A DNA stretch of 64,000 nt from Hormiphora californensis (lineage: Eukaryota; Animalia; Ctenophora), in assembly GCA_020137815.1 (NCBI GenBank), contig CM035357.1, positions 3,782,001 to 3,846,000 on the forward strand, in the 5' to 3' direction. Position numbers and translations under genes: made by a program. Of the stretch, positions 20,508-64,000 are shown piece by piece (the stretch's first letter is position 1; every line of letters starts with the position of its first letter). Below the pieces are notes generated by a model. The model saw nothing but the letters and a program-made list of their open reading frames with translations, did no database searches and had not been told where the DNA came from.

Positions 20508-23112
20508 TCACAAATCCTCCACAGCCAAGGGAGTGTTATCCAGCGGTAGAATCTTGTTGCCATGGTTACCATGGTATTGGTTGCCAAGGAGCCTCCGTTG
20601 CTTCACTTCTTCGGGTGAACTGGCGATTGGCTGCCCCAGGGTTTCCGGCAGGAGATAGGAACACACTGCCCCCAACAAACATAGACCAACCATGATTGAA
20701 AATGAGGCGACGAAGCCCCCGGTAGCATCCACCAAGCTGCCGAATAGAAAGGGGCACGCCAAACCAAAGATCTTGGACGAGGAGGAGCACAGACCAATGA
20801 CTGTTCCAGTGTGTGTACAGGGGGGTAGCTCAACATTCCACAATATTAATCCAGTGTAGACACCAGATACAAAGAATTGTGCCAAAATGCTCGCAATGCT
20901 GGCGACTGTCCATCCATTGTTTCCCAGTGGGACAGCGCTTGTTGCTCCTCCAATGGCAAGGAGCAGGGCAGCGATGACAAAAGACCATGTCATGTATCGC
21001 CGTCTACCTAAGACCCTCATTGCAGGCACGAATGTGATATTTGCAGCGATTTGGACGGCCATCGATAAGAAATACCCACTCGAAGTGACGGGAACGATCT
21101 TATCCCACGCATAGTTGACCCCATAATAACACAAGTAGATGACGCACCACAATATTATCTGAGCAAGTGTTTCCAGGAACAGGATTTTATGTAAAACTAA
21201 AGTTATCATTTGTTCCTTGATGCTAACTTTCTTTTGCTCGTTTTCCGAAACCGGCCTGATCCCTTGACTACTTTCGGGTTCACTGTCGAACCCCTTCCAC
21301 TCTGTCTTGTTAATTTGTGCAATCCTCCGAAAAGAAGCCTCAGCCTGGGCCACCTTCCCCATTATTATGTCAGACCGTGGGGACTCAGGCAGGAATACGA
21401 TGGGTAGGTTGAATACCAAACAATAGGTGACGGTCACGTAGTAGGATTTTCTCCAATCAGAAACGAGACTCATGGCAACAAGTGGCACTATGCCGGCCGA
21501 CAACATAGTCATTCCTATGGCTATTGTGGCTTCTCTGAACCTGAAAATAAAATACTCATTGGTTTCCAATAAACTGCTGCTGGCAGTGGCATATGCCGCA
21601 ATAAATCATCCATCATATAATATTGTCAAGAAAATCAGCCACACGTCGACAAAAAACCCTAATTTCTATAAAATCAATTTGTAACACATCATATTTCTAC
21701 ACGGCAAATGGCAGAAAATTGGTCGATTCCCATTCATTTACACAAGGAAGTAATCATTTAAGTTACCTTGAGGGGATCAGGTCGGATGTAAGGACATATA
21801 TGCCCATAAGTTCCAGATAAATCCCAAAGCCCTGTCCAAATCTAACTGCTAACAGTAGCGGGTAACCATTGCAAAACACTCCCCCAAAACTGGACAATAA
21901 AACAACAGCGCTCCCACAAAGCACAGTCTTCTTGACCCCGAACAAGTCATACATTAATCCTCCCAAGAAAATACCGAACAGGCCTCCTCCGATGGGCATG
22001 GATGCCACCGTGTCCTTGATTAGGGGAGATGCACAGCACTATGTGGTCATGTCCGATAGGCTCGCGAGATTTAGTGATTTTGATAGAAAACGCGCAGTAG
22101 ATGCTCAATTTTGACCAAGATCCAACCTCGTTGCGCGTTTTTACGTGTAAAACCAGCGCTGACAAGTGCTTTTTTAGCATAAATATCGCATTTAATACAT
22201 GACCGCATCGGACCGGTTGCGATGGAAAGGTTGCATAGTAATCTCTAGCCCCCTAGCTTTCTTTTGATACCAAAATTTAGGTTGCGCTTTGAACAGAAGC
22301 CAGTTTTTGGGCTATAGGATGAACTTTGATGCCATGCTGTCCAAAACCTGCCGCACTTTCAGCCAAGTTATGGGTAGCAAAATGATCTTTAGACGATTAC
22401 CTACAACTGCTACACAATTTCCAGGGTGTTTGACAGCACACGCAAGCGTGCACGCTCCCTGAAAGCGCCTAACAAAATCGCGCAAAACCCCTCAAAACGG
22501 AGGATTCCTATCGGACAAATGCGCGTTTTGACCACATAGTGCACAGGTGAGGTTGAAATCTAAGATGTAGGATGTGCGATGTGAATGGGGTACCCAGTAG
22601 AAATCAACGTCTTGTTTCCAGTCGGGCACGTTACACGGAGATTCAATGAAAGCCTGTAAAAACTCATGTTAGTTTTTAGCCACTACATATTATTATTATT
22701 AGGAAAATTTTTCAACTGATTCACCTTGATATTTTTACACTCCAGAGATATGCATTTCCAATCAGTGGGGCTTTCTCCTAAAAGTGTAACACATTATAGA
22801 ATTACTGCTGTTATAGAATCCCAACGGTCAGGCATAATTAATGGGTTTGTTATATTCTAACCCTCCTTTACGTTTGTAGAATTCGGGCCGAACGGGTGTA
22901 GAAACAAAATAAAAGTCAGAAAACGGAAGAAATTATTTCCTCTGACCTCTCAGCTTGAATCATATAATGGTATACATACCTATAAACGAGACTGAGAAAA
23001 CAACAACAAACTCAAGCAGTTGAGCTAAAAACGGAGACAACGCCAACAGGAGCCACCTTGGTCTCACACTCACACAGACCTCTTCGAGTGCTGTGGCAGC
23101 TAGACTTGGCAT
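20508..23112 (-). CDS. SLC22/organic cation transporter-like MFS protein, left copy; exon 3 interrupted by a Transib-like MITE
   Basis: Mirror of the right copy. Motifs DFNLTC, GGLMYDLFGVKK, LPESPR, YYG, LGRR, ELPP and LPETLG are typical of the SLC22/sugar porter fold. Confidence 0.82.
22037..22541. mobile_element. Transib-like MITE, TSD CACAG
   Basis: CACAG|CACTATGTGGTC...GACCACATAGTG|CACAG; the empty site is in the right arm (26837-26841). Confidence 0.85.
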
Positions 23113-24928: not shown

Positions 24929-27900
24929 ATGCCAAGTCTAGCTGCCACAGCACTCGAAGAGGTCTGTGTGAGTGTGAGACCAAGGTGGCTCCTGTTGGCG
25001 TTGTCTCCGTTTTTAGCTCAACTGCTTGAGTTTGTTGTTGTTTTCTCAGTCTCGTTTATAGGTATGTATACCATTATATGATTCAAGCTGAGAGGTCAGA
25101 GGAAATAATTTCTTCCGTTTTCTGACTTTTATTTTGTTTCTACACCCGTTCGGCCCGAATTCTACAAACGTAAAGGAGGGTTAGAATATAACAAACCCAT
25201 TAATTATGCCTGACCGTTGGGATTCTATAACAGCAGTAATTCTATAATGTGTTACACTTTTAGGAGAAAGCCCCACTGATTGGAAATGCATATCTCTGGA
25301 GTGTAAAAATATCAAGGTGAATCAGTTGAAAAATTTTCCTAACTAGCGCACCCATTGGGTGCGCCTGAAATAAGGGCTTTTTGATAACCCAACCGGCTTC
25401 GCCGGGTGTTTCTTTTCGCCCCTTTCAACGTCAATAAAACCGTTGCCATGGCAACTGAATTGGTAACTATGGGGACTGGCCTGTTAAAAGTCATTCGAAA
25501 ATATTAACAAACTTCCACTGGAAGTTCCAAAAGTGTGAATGACAGCTAAATACAGCTTTGGGCACATAACATGTTTTATGAAGGAGCAGCCTGTCGCGTA
25601 GAAACGCACTGAACGAACGGCCATCACGACGTTCATCTCCAAATTATAATATAGATAATAATAATATGTAGTGGCTAAAAACTAACATGAGTTTTTACAG
25701 GCTTTCATTGAATCTCCGTGTAACGTGCCCTACTGGAAACAAGACGTTGATTTCTACTGGGTACCTCGTTCACATCGCACATCCTACATCTCACAGTGCT
25801 GCGAGGGGCCAGTTTGCTTTTTGAGTATTTTAGTCAAAAAACTAACTTTTGATATTTGGTTCAGCTCGAAGACCCGGACCAGATGGACTATTCAAAAAGC
25901 GCCTTTGCCCACACCTTCCTGGAGAAAAATGAGGTTAACTTTTTGCCCAAAACTGGTGTTAACCTCAATAAATCATAGACTGCAAGTCATAAGACCATGA
26001 AGCCGGTTCTAATAGTTAAATCTCGCCAGGGGTATAGTTTGTATGTAATTTGACAATCCTAAACCAAGCCATTGGCAAAATTTTAGAGGTTAACATTATT
26101 TCCGAAAAGTTACATTTTTGCGATTATTTCGTAATAATTTCGTCAGGTCTAGCGGAATTTCCAAACGAGATATCTTAGAACTGGGCCTTGTAATTTGGTA
26201 AGAAAGGTCCTAAGTAACTGAATTAACATTTTGAAGGGGAAAATGGGGTGTGGTTTTTATTTTATTGAGGTTAACATGCTTAAAAGGTGTAATATTTCAC
26301 TTTTTTTTACACTTTTTAAGCATGTTAACCTCAATAAAATAAAAACCACACCCCATTTTCCCTTCAAAATGTTAATTCAGTTAGTTAGGACCTTTCTTAC
26401 CAAATTACAAGGCCCAGTTCTAAGATATCTCGTTTGGAAATTCCGCTAGACCTGACGAAATTATTACGAAATAATCGCAAAAATGTAACTTTTCGGAAAT
26501 AATGTTAACCTCTAAAATTTTGCCAATGGCTTGGTTTAGGATTGTCAAATTACATACAAACTATACCCCTGGCGAGATTTAACTATTAGAACCGGCTTCA
26601 TGGTCTTATGACTTGCAGTCTATGATTTGTTGAGGTTAACACCAGTTTTGGGCAAAAAGTTAACCTCATTTTTCTCCAGGAAGGTGTGGGCAAAGGCGCT
26701 TTTTGAATAGTCCATCTGGTCCGGGTCTTCGAGCTGAACCAAATATCAAAAGTTAGTTTTTTGACTAAAATACTCGATATTCTAACTGAACAAAAGTGGC
26801 ATTTCGCAGCACTGTGCATCTTAGATTTCAACCTCACCTGTGCATCTCCCCTAATCAAGGACACGGTGGCATCCATGCCCATCGGAGGAGGCCTGTTCGG
26901 TATTTTCTTGGGAGGATTAATGTATGACTTGTTCGGGGTCAAGAAGACTGTGCTTTGTGGGAGCGCTGTTGTTTTATTGTCCAGTTTTGGGGGAGTGTTT
27001 TGCAATGGTTACCCGCTACTGTTAGCAGTTAGATTTGGACAGGGCTTTGGGATTTATCTGGAACTTATGGGCATATATGTCCTTACATCCGACCTGATCC
27101 CCTCAAGGTAACTTAAATGATTACTTCCTTGTGTAAATGAATGGGAATCGACCAATTTTCTGCCATTTGCCGTGTAGAAATATGATGTGTTACAAATTGA
27201 TTTTATAGAAATTAGGGTTTTTTTGTCGACGTGTGGCTGATTTTCTTGACAATATTATATGATGGATGATTTATTGCGGCACATGCCACTGCCAGCAGCA
27301 GTTTATTGGAAACCAATGAGTATTTTATTTTCAGGTTCAGAGAAGCCACAATAGCCATAGGAATGACTATGTTGTCGGCCGGCATAGTGCCACTTGTTGC
27401 CATGAGTCTCGTTTCTGATTGGAGAAAATCCTACTACGTGACCATCACCTATTGTTTGGTATTCAACCTACCCATCGTATTCCTGCCTGAGTCCCCACGG
27501 TCTGACATAATAATGGGGAAGGTGGCCCAGGCTGAGGCTTCTTTTCGGAGGATTGCACAAATTAACAAGACAGAGTGGAAGGGGTTCGACAGTGAACCCG
27601 AAAGTAGTCAAGGGATCAGGGTTTCGGAAAACGAGCAAAAGAAAGTTAGCATCAAGGAACAAATGATAACTTTAGTTTTACATAAAATCCTGTTCCTGGA
27701 AACACTTGCTCTGATAATATTGTGGTGCGTCATCTCCTTCTGTTATTTTGGGGTCAACTATGCGTGGGATAAGATCGTTCCCGTCACTTCGAGTGGGTAT
27801 TTCTTATCGATGGCCGTCCAAATCGCTGCAAATATCACATTCGTGCCTGCAATGAGGGTCTTAGGTAGACGGCGATACATGACATGGTCTTTTGTCATCG

Positions 27901-28364
27901 CTGCCCTGCTCCTTGCCATTGGAGGAGCAACAAGCGCTGTCCCACTGGGAAACAATGGATGGACAGTCGCCAGCATTGCGAGCATTTTGGCACAATTCTT
28001 TGTATCTGGTGTCTTCACTGGATTATTATTGTGGAATGTTGAGCTATCCCCCTGTACACACACTGGAACAGTCATTGGTCTGTGCTCCTCCTCGTCCAAG
28101 ATCTTTGGTTTGGCGTGCCCCTTTCTATTCGGCAGCTTGGTGGATGCTACCGGGGGCTTCGTCGCCTCATTTTCAATCATGGTTGGTCTATGTTTGGTGG
28201 GGGCAGTGTGTTCCTATCTCCTGCCGGAAACCCTGGGGCAGCCAATCGCCAGTTCACCCGAAGAAGTGAAGCAACGGAGGCTCCTTGGCAACCAATACCA
28301 TGGTAACCATGGCAACAAGATTCTACCGCTGGATAACACTCCCTTGGCTGTGGAGGATTTGTGA
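24929..28364 (+). CDS. SLC22/organic cation transporter-like MFS protein, right copy; exon 3 interrupted by a different Transib-like MITE
   Basis: Exons 24929-25061, 25264-25316, 25701-27107 (insertion 25792-26816) and 27335-28364 are phase-consistent once the element and one TSD are removed. Confidence 0.82.
25343..25655 (-). mobile_element. Non-autonomous Helitron in SLC22 intron 2
   Basis: Minus strand reads A|TCTATATT...GCGCACCCAATGGGTGCG-CTAG|T: 5' TC, 3' hairpin, CTAG end, AT target, no TSD. The empty site is in the left arm (~22700). Confidence 0.88.
25792..26816. mobile_element. Transib-like foldback MITE with CACAGTG termini, TSD CATCT
   Basis: CATCT|CACAGTGCTGCGA...TCGCAGCACTGTG|CATCT; ~480 bp internal arms; empty site in the left arm (22563-22567). 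Confidence 0.88.
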
Positions 28365-60092: not shown

Positions 60093-60106
60093 GAGAGAGA
60101 GAGAGA

Positions 60107-60188
<82 letters not shown>

Positions 60189-60195
60189 GAGAGTC
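60093..60195. repeat. (GA)n microsatellite
   Basis: Dinucleotide run upstream of the peptide gene promoter. Confidence 0.95.
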
Positions 60196-60315: not shown

Positions 60316-60387
60316 GATTGGCCGGCTAATGGATTCTAATGAGATGCAAATAAGTGACGTCTGCATTGTTTGCTCCCAGTATATAAA
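60316..60387 (+). promoter_or_regulatory. Candidate core promoter of the peptide precursor gene
   Basis: Reverse CCAAT ~60317, octamer ATGCAAAT 60344-60351, CRE-like TGACGTC 60355-60361, TATATAAA 60380-60387; probable 5'UTR intron ending at TTCTAG 60633. Confidence 0.55.
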
Positions 60388-60634
60388 TTAGCTTACCGGT
60401 GCCAACAATTTACAAGCAGCTTAGGGCATTTTGTTGATTTTGAGTAAACCCCAGTTGCTCAACAACTAGTTACCATGCAGCACAATATCTGCTTACTACA
60501 ATTATTTGTTAACTCCATATAGCAGCTTATTGAACCAACTATCACATTAAACTGTGTAGCTTGCTTTTAAATCCTCATTGAAATACTACTATTTTTATAT
60601 TCTTTAAAAAATTTTTAACCAAACTATTTCTAGG

Positions 60635-60937
60635 ATGTATCTGGTTCTGATAGCCCTTTCTTTTGGATTGGTATACCCTCGATCCCTTGAAGATGCTTCG
60701 TGGGACAGACCGGGAGGACTGAGTGAAGATCTAGAGAGCAGCTGGGACAGACCGGGAGGACTAAGTGAAGATCTAGAGAGCAGCTGGGACAGACCGGGAG
60801 GCCTAAGTGAAGATTTTGAATCATGGGACAGGCCTGGCGGGCTCAGCGAAGAGGAATGGGATCGACCTGGTGGCCTAAGTGAAGAGGAATGGGATCGACC
60901 TGGTGGCCTAAGTGAAGAAGAAATGAAGCAAATATAG
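60635..60937 (+). CDS. Probable neuropeptide precursor (signal peptide + 6 x WDRPGGLSE with acidic spacers)
   Basis: Hydrophobic N-terminus; six amino-acid-identical repeats encoded by different synonymous codons; splice acceptor 1 nt before the ATG. Confidence 0.85.
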   Translation: MYLVLIALSFGLVYPRSLEDASWDRPGGLSEDLESSWDRPGGLSEDLESSWDRPGGLSEDFESWDRPGGLSEEEWDRPGGLSEEEWDRPGGLSEEEMKQI

Positions 60938-61519
60938 ACTATTTTAATTTAATGGATGCAATTGCATGACGCATGTGAGTTGTGCAATGTTTTTAATATG
61001 CCTTTTTCCTTCCAAAAGTTGTATTTTTCTTTGGAATCTTTACCCAATTTGGTAAATTTTGCACAAAAATAAATAGTCGTAAGAAAGAAATAGCTGTACG
61101 GACAAATATAAACTCGAATGGGTTTCAAGTTTGACGCTTTGTCCGAAGTTAACATTTTGGCTTGGAGAGAATGTAACAAGATGACTAGGACAAAATCCAT
61201 ATTCCAAAAGTGAAACCAATTATCATGAAGTCAACCCCAACAATGACCAAACCTAACGCATACTGAATGGCTTATAAAAAACCGGTTACATTATTACCCA
61301 TGGACGAAAACTCTAGCTTAACTTTTTAAACGTTTCGTCCGAAAAGTATCAATCCACGTTCCAAGCCCATTAAAATCAGTGAGCTATAGAGTTTCCATCT
61401 AGCACATAAAACAACAGATACTAAAAAATGTGGGATCTAATTCACATCTCTCTCTTCTTCTCTCTTTTCTCTCTCTCTCTTCTCTCTCTCTCTTCTCTCT
61501 CTCTCTCTTCTCTCTTCTT

Positions 61520-63210
61520 TTTTGAAAGCCTCAGGCCAACTAGCATGGTTAGCTTTCTTGATTATGTGTGTAATGTGTGGTTTCCATGTGAGGTCAGGGT
61601 CAACTATCACGCCGAGATCTCTCACTTCTGCCCTTCCGCTGACAACTATGTTGGATGTTAGTTGGTATGGGCTGCTCGTTCCAAGTTCTTTCCGTTGTTG
61701 TAGTAATTGGAACTTGGTGTCGTTGAGTTCCATACTGTTTTCGAGTGCCCAGCTGAAAACATTTTGTAAGTCATCCATCAACAGTTTTGCGATCCATTCC
61801 TCGCTCGACACTGACTTATGTAGCTTGGTGTCATCAGCGAACATCTTCGATTTGCTGTGGAGCACATTAATCTGGTAGGTTATTAATGTATAACACAAAA
61901 AGTAGTGGTCCTAGGACCGTCCCCTGTGGGACTCCAGATCTTTACGGGTCCCGGTTCGATGGTACTCCGTCAACAATGACTGACTGGGTCCTACCCATCA
62001 GGAAGCTTCTAATCCAGTCTAGGAGGTCTCCCCGGATGCCATATCCTGATAGTTTTTCTCTAGAAGGGTGAGATGCATACTTTATCGAATGCTTTCGAAT
62101 AGTCAAGATAGAGCACATCTGCATTCTTCCCATTCTCTAAATCATCGATTACGTCCTCAATGTGCTGGATCAGATGTGATAGACAAGATCTGTTACTCCT
62201 AAAGCCATGCTGGTCCGGCGAGAGGAGGTTGTTCTCCTCCACAAAGTTAACCATCTGCTTCCGGATGACTCTCTCTAGGACCTTAACAAGTTGGCTTGTC
62301 AAGCTAACCGGTCTGTAGTTCGCGGGAGAGCTCTTATTATCCTTCTTGTAAATTGGGACTATTGACTGCTGTTTAAAAATAGACGCAATGTCCCCAGTCT
62401 GTATGGACGCCTGCCACAGCTCCGCCATTACTGGCGCTAAGGCTCTATTGCACTTTTTCAGCATTATTGCTGGGAACTTGTCTGGGCCCGGTGCGGTGTG
62501 GGGAGACAGTTCTTTGATTGCTTCAACGACTGTGTCAGTAGTGATAGTCACACCACTCATAACAGGGGATCCTGGTGGTCCCTGCTCATTAACTGGCCCT
62601 TCGATAGGTTCACTAAACACCTTCTGGTACTGGTCTTGGAGGAGGTTGGCCATGATGGCGGGGTCGGCATGTAGTTCACCATTTTGGTCTTTAAGAGGAC
62701 CAATTCCTGACTTAGATGCCTTGTTCTTCTTTGCGTAGGTGTAGAAAGCTTTTGGATTCACTTTGATCTTTCCCAGGATTTTTCTTTCCTCCCGCAGTCT
62801 GTCTTCGTGGATGTTAGATGCCATGTTTAATTCAATTCGTGAAAGTGCAGTGTACAGTTCCTCAATCCTCTTACACTGTATCGGGCACTCTTTCTCTTTT
62901 TTCTTGGCACCTTTTAGTTTACGTACAAGTGCTCTTTTCTTCACAAGAAGCTTTCTCCGGTGCTTTGGGATCTTCTGAACACGTCTCTTTCGAGAGCCAC
63001 TGTGTTGGGGTACGAATTGGGCACATACTTTTGCAATGGACGATCTGAATTTCTCCCAGGCTTCGTTTTGGTCTTTTGCAGAGGTCACATCAGTCCAATC
63101 TATTTTGTGAAGTGCAATGTTGAGCTCTTCCCATGTCTCCTGGGTAACCTTGTTGAAGTTAAAGTTGTCAAACTCTGACTGCGGTTCGTAGAGTTTGGGC
63201 TCCTCGCTCT
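61520..63210 (-). mobile_element. CR1-like LINE fragment (ORF2 reverse transcriptase, frameshifted)
   Basis: APGPDKFP, PIYKK, NYRPVSLTS, QHGFRSNRSC, LDYSKAFDKV, GVPQGTVLGPLLF, MFADDTKL and RDLGVIVD spread over several frames. Confidence 0.93.
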
Positions 63211-64000
63211 CTCGAGAGAGAGAGATGTTGGTTGGATGGCATAACGGCCATAACGAGCAAATTGTCGCAGATTCTGCCACCCGGTATTGGGTTGAGAACC
63301 ATTTCCTCGCAGATAGTTTAGTAGTTTTGGGGTTCCAAGAAGGCGGAAAAAATTGACAAACGTTCTGATTTAGTTATCTAGAAGAATTTAGTTTTCTAGT
63401 AGCCTCTCAAACTTTCAGGCATCAGGGATATTTTTGGCTGTTCCCTGACTATTACCCTCAAATCTCAGTGAATTGCCATCACTGAGCACGACTGTTTTCC
63501 CCCATTACTGAGCCTTGAGATCTGAGGTCTATAAGTGGTAAATAGCCATGACCCGAACCTGAGATTCGGGCAAAACTGTTTTTCCCATATCACTCCTTCA
63601 AATTATGGACGACAGATCTTCTATCATGAGGCTGGGAATGGAAATATGTATAGTCTGAGGATTCTTGAGATCGGTGAGAGCGATGATGAATAACATGTTT
63701 TACTTTACTTGTTAGCGGGCTTGTATTAATAACTAGCTAGAGCTATAGGACATTATAATGCAAATTAGTTCAAAAACAAACGTTTGGAATAATTATGGCA
63801 TTACAATAACTATATTATAGGCCGTGATTGAAGAAAGCGGTCAAGAAGACTCCAAGACGCAAACTAAAGGCACTGAGTGCTCTCTCAGTTTACATCCGTT
63901 AACATCTTGAGGGAAGTTTTAAAAACACGGGTAAAGAATGACGGAGCGGCGATAGAGAAAGGAACTTGATGAAACCTCATAAGTACACAATTAGGCACTG

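Follow-up and report, generated by a model that had tools for sequence, protein, structure and literature searches.

We propose that a short open reading frame in the genome of Hormiphora californensis encodes a convertase-independent precursor of the pentapeptide amide WDRPG-amide, possibly released with an N-terminal LSE extension, and we give this reading a probability of roughly 0.55. The frame lies on the plus strand at 60635-60937 of the window, by which we mean the whole stretch of 64,000 nucleotides that was analysed (contig CM035357.1, positions 3,782,001 to 3,846,000), and positions below refer to that window unless another location is given. In the proposed model the product would be a 100-aa secreted pre-propeptide laid out as an N-terminal signal peptide (about 17 residues), then six LSE-(one to five acidic or Ser residues)-WDRPGG units and the tail LSEEEMKQI. 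Following removal of the signal peptide, an endopeptidase other than a K/R-specific convertase would cleave the Gly-Leu bond at every G|LSE[E/D] junction. Peptidylglycine amidating monooxygenase (PAM) would then act on the exposed Gly to yield ...WDRPG-amide, the acidic LSE-x extension perhaps being trimmed at acidic residues to leave the pentapeptide WDRPG-amide, and the peptides would leave the cell as diffusible signals. By analogy with what has been described in the phylum, the gene is probably a new, lineage-specific ctenophore amidated-peptide precursor with non-basic processing, a kind of precursor that is already known.

The frame opens with ATG, runs for 100 codons to a TAG stop and forms a single-exon coding sequence. 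This complete CDS (60635-60937, plus strand), comprising the signal region, six units and a tail, is supported both by RNA contigs of 97-100% identity and by a related protein, P0001, in which the frame is kept. The WDRPGGLSE units, all on the plus strand, fall into three codon versions: an A-type for units 1 (60701-60727), 2 (60743-60769) and 3 (60785-60811), a B-type for unit 4 (60824-60850) and a C-type for units 5 (60857-60883) and 6 (60890-60916). The first unit is preceded by (LE)DAS; units 1 and 2 are each followed by DLESS, unit 3 by DFES, units 4 and 5 by EE, and unit 6 by the tail EEMKQI and the stop codon. The original prediction, made from the letters alone, had placed the ORF at these coordinates with exactly six units and had quoted three codon versions, which are those of units 1, 4 and 5/6; the coordinates, the count and the codons are all correct. 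Its description of the spacers as only acidic and Ser residues holds in that such residues are present, but Leu and Phe occur in them too.

Each of the six units carries a G-G pair, and with it a candidate amide-donor Gly. As had been predicted, the translation contains no K/R after the Gly of any unit; none precedes the Trp either, and the Arg inside each unit stands before Pro. The only basic residues in the whole protein are R16, one Arg per unit and a Lys in the tail, and the 83 residues that follow the signal region hold 26 D/E against 7 K/R, with a pI of 4.05. The protein has several copies of one conserved short peptide with variable spacers between them (six copies here, four in P0001); the K/R convertase sites that lie beside the copies in a classical multi-copy precursor are absent. 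Residues 1-17 (60635-60685, plus strand) form a signal-peptide-like region with a hydrophobic core at residues 2-14, identified by Kyte-Doolittle hydropathy and by its conservation in P0001. Its hydrophobic stretch, MYLVLIALSFGLVY, is followed by PRS, and 11-residue Kyte-Doolittle means reach 2.2-2.9 at residues 1-14, the core of 13 residues standing without a charged n-region or a textbook (-3,-1) site. Cleavage is likely near ...VYPRS|L, which would give a signal peptide of about 17 residues. The signal-like N-terminus noted earlier is borne out by this hydrophobic run and by its retention in P0001.

P0001 is the sole true relative found by phmmer and by a word-indexed search across 5.8 billion clustered and 1.84 billion representative proteins. 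This 77-aa protein, from a contig of 833 nt in an ENA assembly, has four units, each an identical WDRPGGLSE, and the same three spacer types. The two proteins have the same signal core, with residues 5-18 identical and residues 2 and 4 different; between signal and first unit P0001 reads LSENAG as against LEDAS in the window gene, and its tail is LSEEEIKQIE as against LSEEEMKQI. The two units that P0001 lacks have near-identical DNA in the window gene, which indicates recent gains or losses.

Expression is supported by RNA from two oligo-dT aquatic metatranscriptomes of one study, which were searched together with one species-labelled run. Both metatranscriptomes contain a few short contigs (55-107 nt) that match 60632-60784 and 60856-60928 at 97-100% identity. 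The species-labelled run (X3) gave no match to the ORF, and the flanks of the ORF, 3′ UTR included, have no comparable contigs in the metatranscriptomes. Lack of a transcript had been named beforehand as the observation that would count against a precursor gene, and oligo-dT RNA contigs are found on the ORF. One of them (X1 record 3) begins with the Illumina adapter, continues with ATTTG and then matches the genome from 60632 (AGGATG...), where the genome itself reads TTTCT, not ATTTG, before the AG acceptor. The published Hormiphora spliced leader ends ...AATTAATTTGAG, its 3′ end being ATTTGAG (PMC8527503), and a 26-base stretch of this leader has 640 matches in the genome as against 0 for the reversed control. 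It is highly probable that the mRNA is leader-G-ATG, formed by spliced-leader trans-splicing, although the junction comprises only seven bases and could be mimicked by an indel allele. The trans-splice acceptor defined by the contig junction is the AG at 60632-60633 (plus strand, tttctAG|G), and the mature mRNA would read ...ATTTGAG|G-ATG. As the leader joins one base before the ATG, 60635 would be the first ATG of the mRNA, and the presence of the join in a contig argues that the contigs are RNA rather than contaminating DNA. A cis-spliced 5′ exon with a donor near 60445 was considered and rejected, since the junction bases fit the trans-spliced leader and no copy of the leader lies within the window. 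Sequence scans also found a TATA-like box (TATATAA, 60380-60386, plus strand), about 250 nt 5′ of the acceptor and possibly an outron promoter, and an AATAAA (61068-61073, plus strand), a candidate polyadenylation signal 131 nt past the stop; the positions of both would fit a small gene.

Selection and recent duplication have both shaped the array. Tandem Repeats Finder (TRF) describes units 1-3 as a 42-bp period of 97% identity and units 4-6 as a 33-bp period of 91% identity, units 5 and 6 being identical, and this recent duplication of DNA within the array leaves about three independent unit lineages, not six. Across the three lineages eight columns of the 27-nt core vary; they record at least 11 substitutions, AGA/CGA among them, and all of these are synonymous. 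Random single changes would be synonymous in just 22-28% of cases, giving a probability of about 7e-8 to 8e-7 for an all-synonymous core. A single peptide is preserved in frame +0 alone, whereas translation in each of the remaining five gives four to six different peptides or stops; an antisense ORF at 60630-60824 was rejected as its frame is not conserved among the units. The constrained block takes in all nine residues, LSE included, and the core is under purifying selection on the protein, far beyond chance. The original prediction had read the codon variation as protein selection and not slippage. The first part stands on the synonymous-only changes, but the second does not, as the 42-bp and 33-bp arrays record recent duplication and codon variation does not exclude slippage.

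The processing that the model requires has precedents within the phylum. Amidated peptides of Bolinopsis have been determined by mass spectrometry, and the cleavage sites described with them include both acidic and basic ones (Hayakawa et al. 2022, PMC9525235); acidic residues are major cleavage sites in both Bolinopsis and Nematostella (PMC9525235). Among the MS-verified peptides in the supplements of the same study are some amidated at a Gly that precedes a non-basic residue. For example, TFQG|LAEDD gives DQLKSGTFQ-amide, WTGG|AMQEEE gives ...GWTG-amide and LNSG|QEE gives LNS-amide (PMC9525235). The cut between Gly and Leu, which had been put forward as a possible step that needs no K/R, has in TFQG|LAEDD its precedent (PMC9525235); non-basic processing is already known for ctenophores and is not new here. 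In the window gene, as in the TFQa, WTGa and LNSa type, the residue after the donor Gly, which is a predicted donor here, is non-basic and leads into an acidic stretch (RPGG-LSEE/D in the window gene). No homology to a named member of that type was found by phmmer over 1.84 billion representatives or by the word-indexed search. Candidate enzymes are also encoded. Every copy has a candidate donor Gly, and the genome encodes PAM, for which PF03712 (the PHM C-domain) scores above cut-off on C4, where the PAM locus lies at 7.69 Mb, and on C8. Genes for M13 (neprilysin/ECE-type) peptidases occur as well.

One of the closest likenesses is to the TFQamide precursor of Bolinopsis and Mnemiopsis (PMC9525235), compared by its printed sequence. 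Both are small ctenophore secretory precursors whose processing, predicted in the window gene, does without dibasic sites; the MS-verified donor Gly of TFQamide is followed by L-A-E-D-D and that of the window gene by L-S-E-E/D-x, and the TFQamide pro-region reads ...ARS-LSEED right after the signal peptide, as P0001 reads ...PRS-LSEN. In contrast, TFQG is present in a single copy as against six, the peptide is unrelated and database searches found no homology. The WTGamide precursor (ML02212a and its Bolinopsis orthologue) offers WTGG|AMQEEE beside RPGG|LSEEE, each with a Gly-amide derived or predicted from G-G, next to which stand a residue that is small or hydrophobic and then an acidic tail, and its peptide likewise has a Trp near the C-terminus. 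Unlike the window gene, it has just one copy, placed at the extreme C-terminal end; its N-terminal cut is at KR and its peptide is 20 residues long.

The junction recurs elsewhere in the genome. Three other multi-copy precursor genes have G-LSEE after a peptide Gly, and the window gene belongs with them to a group of G-LSEE-delimited multi-copy precursors that has not been described. The first (L040:1405-2523, plus strand; G000:C2:6751850-6752968) is a 372-aa precursor with 23 LYYVPG copies, of which the first is followed by LSEED and the other 22 by EKR(E/D)ADSAG. The second (L070:3750-4607, minus strand; G000:C8:7950749-7951606) is an open frame of 286 aa without a start codon of its own, probably an exon, that holds many copies of ELMRG-KR, DLMMRG-KR and EAEEGSRG-KR, its last DLMMRG copy being followed by LSEEE; it resembles a classical multi-copy R-amide precursor and may be related to the lobate PARa precursor. 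The third (L069:4516-5757, minus strand; G000:C4:6688515-6689756) is a 414-aa ORF that begins like a signal peptide, with MFVLIICLLATSLG and next GPVKR; its PSLRLG-LSEE[A] units stand in tandem, 31 of them exact and about 34 in total, and no K/R lies between the copies. It is a second, larger candidate for a precursor with G-LSEE only, whose predicted product would be (A)PSLRL-amide. BLASTP aligned it with the window ORF only at GLSEE, in register and with an 11-residue period (pair E 0.002), and as judged from their predicted proteins the two have the same architecture. The position of LSEE[E/D] where a KR spacer otherwise stands between copies of the same peptide, in two of these genes, is the best argument that the junction is processed.

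A similar junction is found in the PARamide precursor (ML1541126a; Bolinopsis, Mnemiopsis), which has tandem 14-residue ...MPSRGGG-LSEEM repeats and also PLRG-LSEEM. When the printed sequences are compared by eye, the DLESS-type units resemble these repeats in having R-x-G-G-L-S-E-E and a period of 14 residues. The differences are that PARa ends ...RPARG at the C-terminus whereas the window gene ends LSEEEMKQI and P0001 LSEEEIKQIE, that PARa has basic residues elsewhere and that no search linked it to the window gene. The C-terminal PAR-amide is the only peptide of PARa detected by MS, the G-LSEE repeats not being among those detected (PMC9525235 supplements). The shared eight-position motif may reflect a common processing signal rather than common descent. 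Taken further, G|L-S-E-E could be a dedicated convertase-independent cleavage signal of ctenophore prohormones, interchangeable with G-KR and read perhaps by an M13/ECE-like or a cathepsin-type enzyme, which would be used exclusively in at least two multi-copy precursors of Hormiphora, those with six WDRPGG and about 34 PSLRLG repeats, and also in the lobate PARa repeats; we advance this generalization tentatively and regard it as rather doubtful. If it were true, WDRPG would represent a new family of amidated transmitters, invisible to K/R-based prediction pipelines, and the ctenophore peptidome would be substantially under-counted.

The same junctions bear on the main rival of the precursor model, in which the gene encodes a repeat protein, secreted and strongly acidic, that would function without being cut, for instance in matrix, adhesive granules, mucus or cation binding, with WDRPGGLSE as binding modules. 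In such a protein the Ser of each L-S-E-E could be phosphorylated, S-x-E being the motif of Golgi casein kinase; a search for a Fam20C-type kinase gave no match, a result that is uninformative and not proof of absence. The lack of K/R convertase sites, the excess of D/E and low pI past the signal region, and the difference in copy number (six against four in P0001) would all suit an intact protein, and the invariance of all nine residues, LSE too, is what a structural repeat predicts. However, a chain of 83 residues past the signal would be unusually short for a structural protein; the core is frozen amid drifting spacers (DLESS, DFES, EE), which is how peptide precursors behave; and two precursors of classical appearance in this genome have G-LSEE instead of G-(E)KR at a junction between copies of one peptide. 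On this evidence we consider an uncut function unlikely.

For the precursor model the invariance of LSE raises the matter of what the unit is. LSE is invariant, and the P0001 propeptide begins with LSE after the predicted signal cut and ends with LSEEE and four to five further residues, from which the unit may be LSE-x-WDRPGG. Such units could, with a single G|L cut, give amides of 10-13 residues, for example LSEEEWDRPG-amide, rather than (S)WDRPG-amide; an intact protein that includes the nine-residue unit would account equally well for the invariant LSE. The longer amides could in turn be trimmed to WDRPG-amide, as is suggested by TFQ-amide, which occurs in two length variants (PMC9525235 supplements). 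The predicted [M+H]+ values are 629.315 for WDRPG-NH2, 716.347 for SWDRPG-NH2, 803.380 for SSWDRPG-NH2, 1144.538 for LEDASWDRPG-NH2, 1216.559 for LSEEEWDRPG-NH2, 1436.644 for LSEDFESWDRPG-NH2 and 1489.692 for LSEDLESSWDRPG-NH2.

In another rival the products are not amidated. The precursor would be cut only at acidic residues, a kind of cleavage described at the N-termini of cnidarian and ctenophore peptides, and the free acids WDRPGGLSE or WDRPGGLSE(E/D)n would be released, with a predicted [M+H]+ of 1016.480 for free-acid WDRPGGLSE. The prominence of acidic cleavage sites in Bolinopsis and Nematostella would favour such products, as would an invariant block that extends beyond WDRPG to the whole nine-residue unit. 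Against this, the double Gly would bring them no advantage, and every MS-verified ctenophore case of Gly followed by a non-basic residue is amidated at that Gly, in a study that selected for amidated peptides; we regard free-acid products as quite unlikely.

Beyond P0001 the searches returned no further relative. The genome itself holds no paralog, the next matches being of low complexity, and R-x-G-G-L-S-E-E back-translated against the genome found only the units of this gene and single matches at chance level. No Pfam domain was found in the ORF, and the ESM Atlas gave no usable match. Among the phmmer matches, P0002/P0003 and P0004-P0061 were rejected as unrelated tandem-repeat ORFs that match through their periodicity, and the exact eight-residue WDRPGGLS of P0002 is discounted, since so large a database should contain such a match by chance. 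A protein-guided scan of JGI metagenome contigs found no relative, and a degenerate WDRPGGLSE DNA pattern gave only 14 single, non-repeated chance matches in the same contigs. WDRPG, GGLSEE and PGGLSE were not found in the full-text literature searched, a comparison outside which lie the 72 predicted Pleurobrachia prohormones (Moroz 2014), and no WDRPG-type peptide occurs in the supplements of Hayakawa et al. 2022 (PMC9525235). The original prediction had not recognised the family, and in agreement with this no described family was found in the protein databases, Pfam or the literature. As far as these comparisons reach, the gene is a pleurobrachiid, lineage-restricted one.

That the ORF is a functionless transcribed minisatellite, periodic G-rich DNA open in one frame by chance, would be consistent with the 42-bp and 33-bp arrays, with the many unrelated tandem-repeat ORFs bearing W-D/H-x-P-G-G-like motifs that phmmer pulls in and with the surroundings of the locus, which has a (GA)50 microsatellite on one side and a LINE fragment on the other, but is very improbable given at least 11 core substitutions that are all synonymous, conservation in one of six frames, the start codon, hydrophobic leader and all units kept in the diverged P0001, and a leader spliced one base before the ATG.

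Two further likenesses help to place the predicted WDRPG-amide. The multi-copy precursors of cnidarians, such as that of Antho-RFamide (Anthopleura, Calliactis), likewise have many identical short copies with acidic residues on the N-terminal side and a Gly donor. On the C-terminal side cnidarian precursors nearly always have G-R or G-KR, whereas no basic residue follows the Gly in the window gene. Vertebrate GnRH has a C-terminal R-P-G-amide. The predicted R-P-G-amide C-terminus from RPGG is like that of GnRH (a term in PMC4814763), a three-residue match at chance level; unlike GnRH, the window gene has no pGlu-His-Trp N-terminus, GKR site, GnRH-associated peptide or homology. The likeness is of interest only in that antibodies might cross-react.

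Ctenophores hold a central place in the debate on how neurons arose, yet to our knowledge experiments have established no more than about a dozen ctenophore transmitter peptides. Published ctenophore prediction pipelines assumed mostly dibasic cleavage sites, so that a precursor without K/R sites would be missed. If WDRPG-type amides exist, they would add one more pleurobrachiid-specific peptide, and this gene, with six identical sites in 83 residues, would form together with the other G-LSEE genes a compact natural substrate. Such a substrate could be used to find the enzyme of non-basic prohormone processing, which is documented by MS and mechanistically unexplained.

Several features of the surroundings were recorded. 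The (GA)50 microsatellite (60093-60193) precedes the start codon by about 440 bp; a (TC)n tract occupies 61447-61500. Directly 3′ of the gene is a fragment of a non-LTR retrotransposon (61437-63280, minus strand), with an RVT_1 match at 62060-63277 and a FADDTKL-type RT motif in the ORF at 61437-61898; this LINE reverse transcriptase is the only Pfam domain found in the neighbouring ORFs. Farther off in the window are two inverted Sugar_tr/MFS (SLC22-like) ORFs, at 20508-21569 (minus strand) and 27306-28364 (plus strand). Elsewhere in the genome, five dispersed copies of a short open frame that begins TGLSEEE[T/A]LERRYWSLLGPWKL..., 1.4-4.4 kb apart, lie in G000:C1:1251638-1260982 (L056-L060) and look like a local repeat family. 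Of the spliced-leader copies, L014 shows GAG|GT as expected; L013 and L015 (G000:C1:96175-96200 and C1:658354-658379, minus strand) have no GT donor and continue directly into other sequence, for example ...TTTGAG|GAAGATGAATCC, and these may be retroposed trans-spliced mRNAs rather than leader genes.
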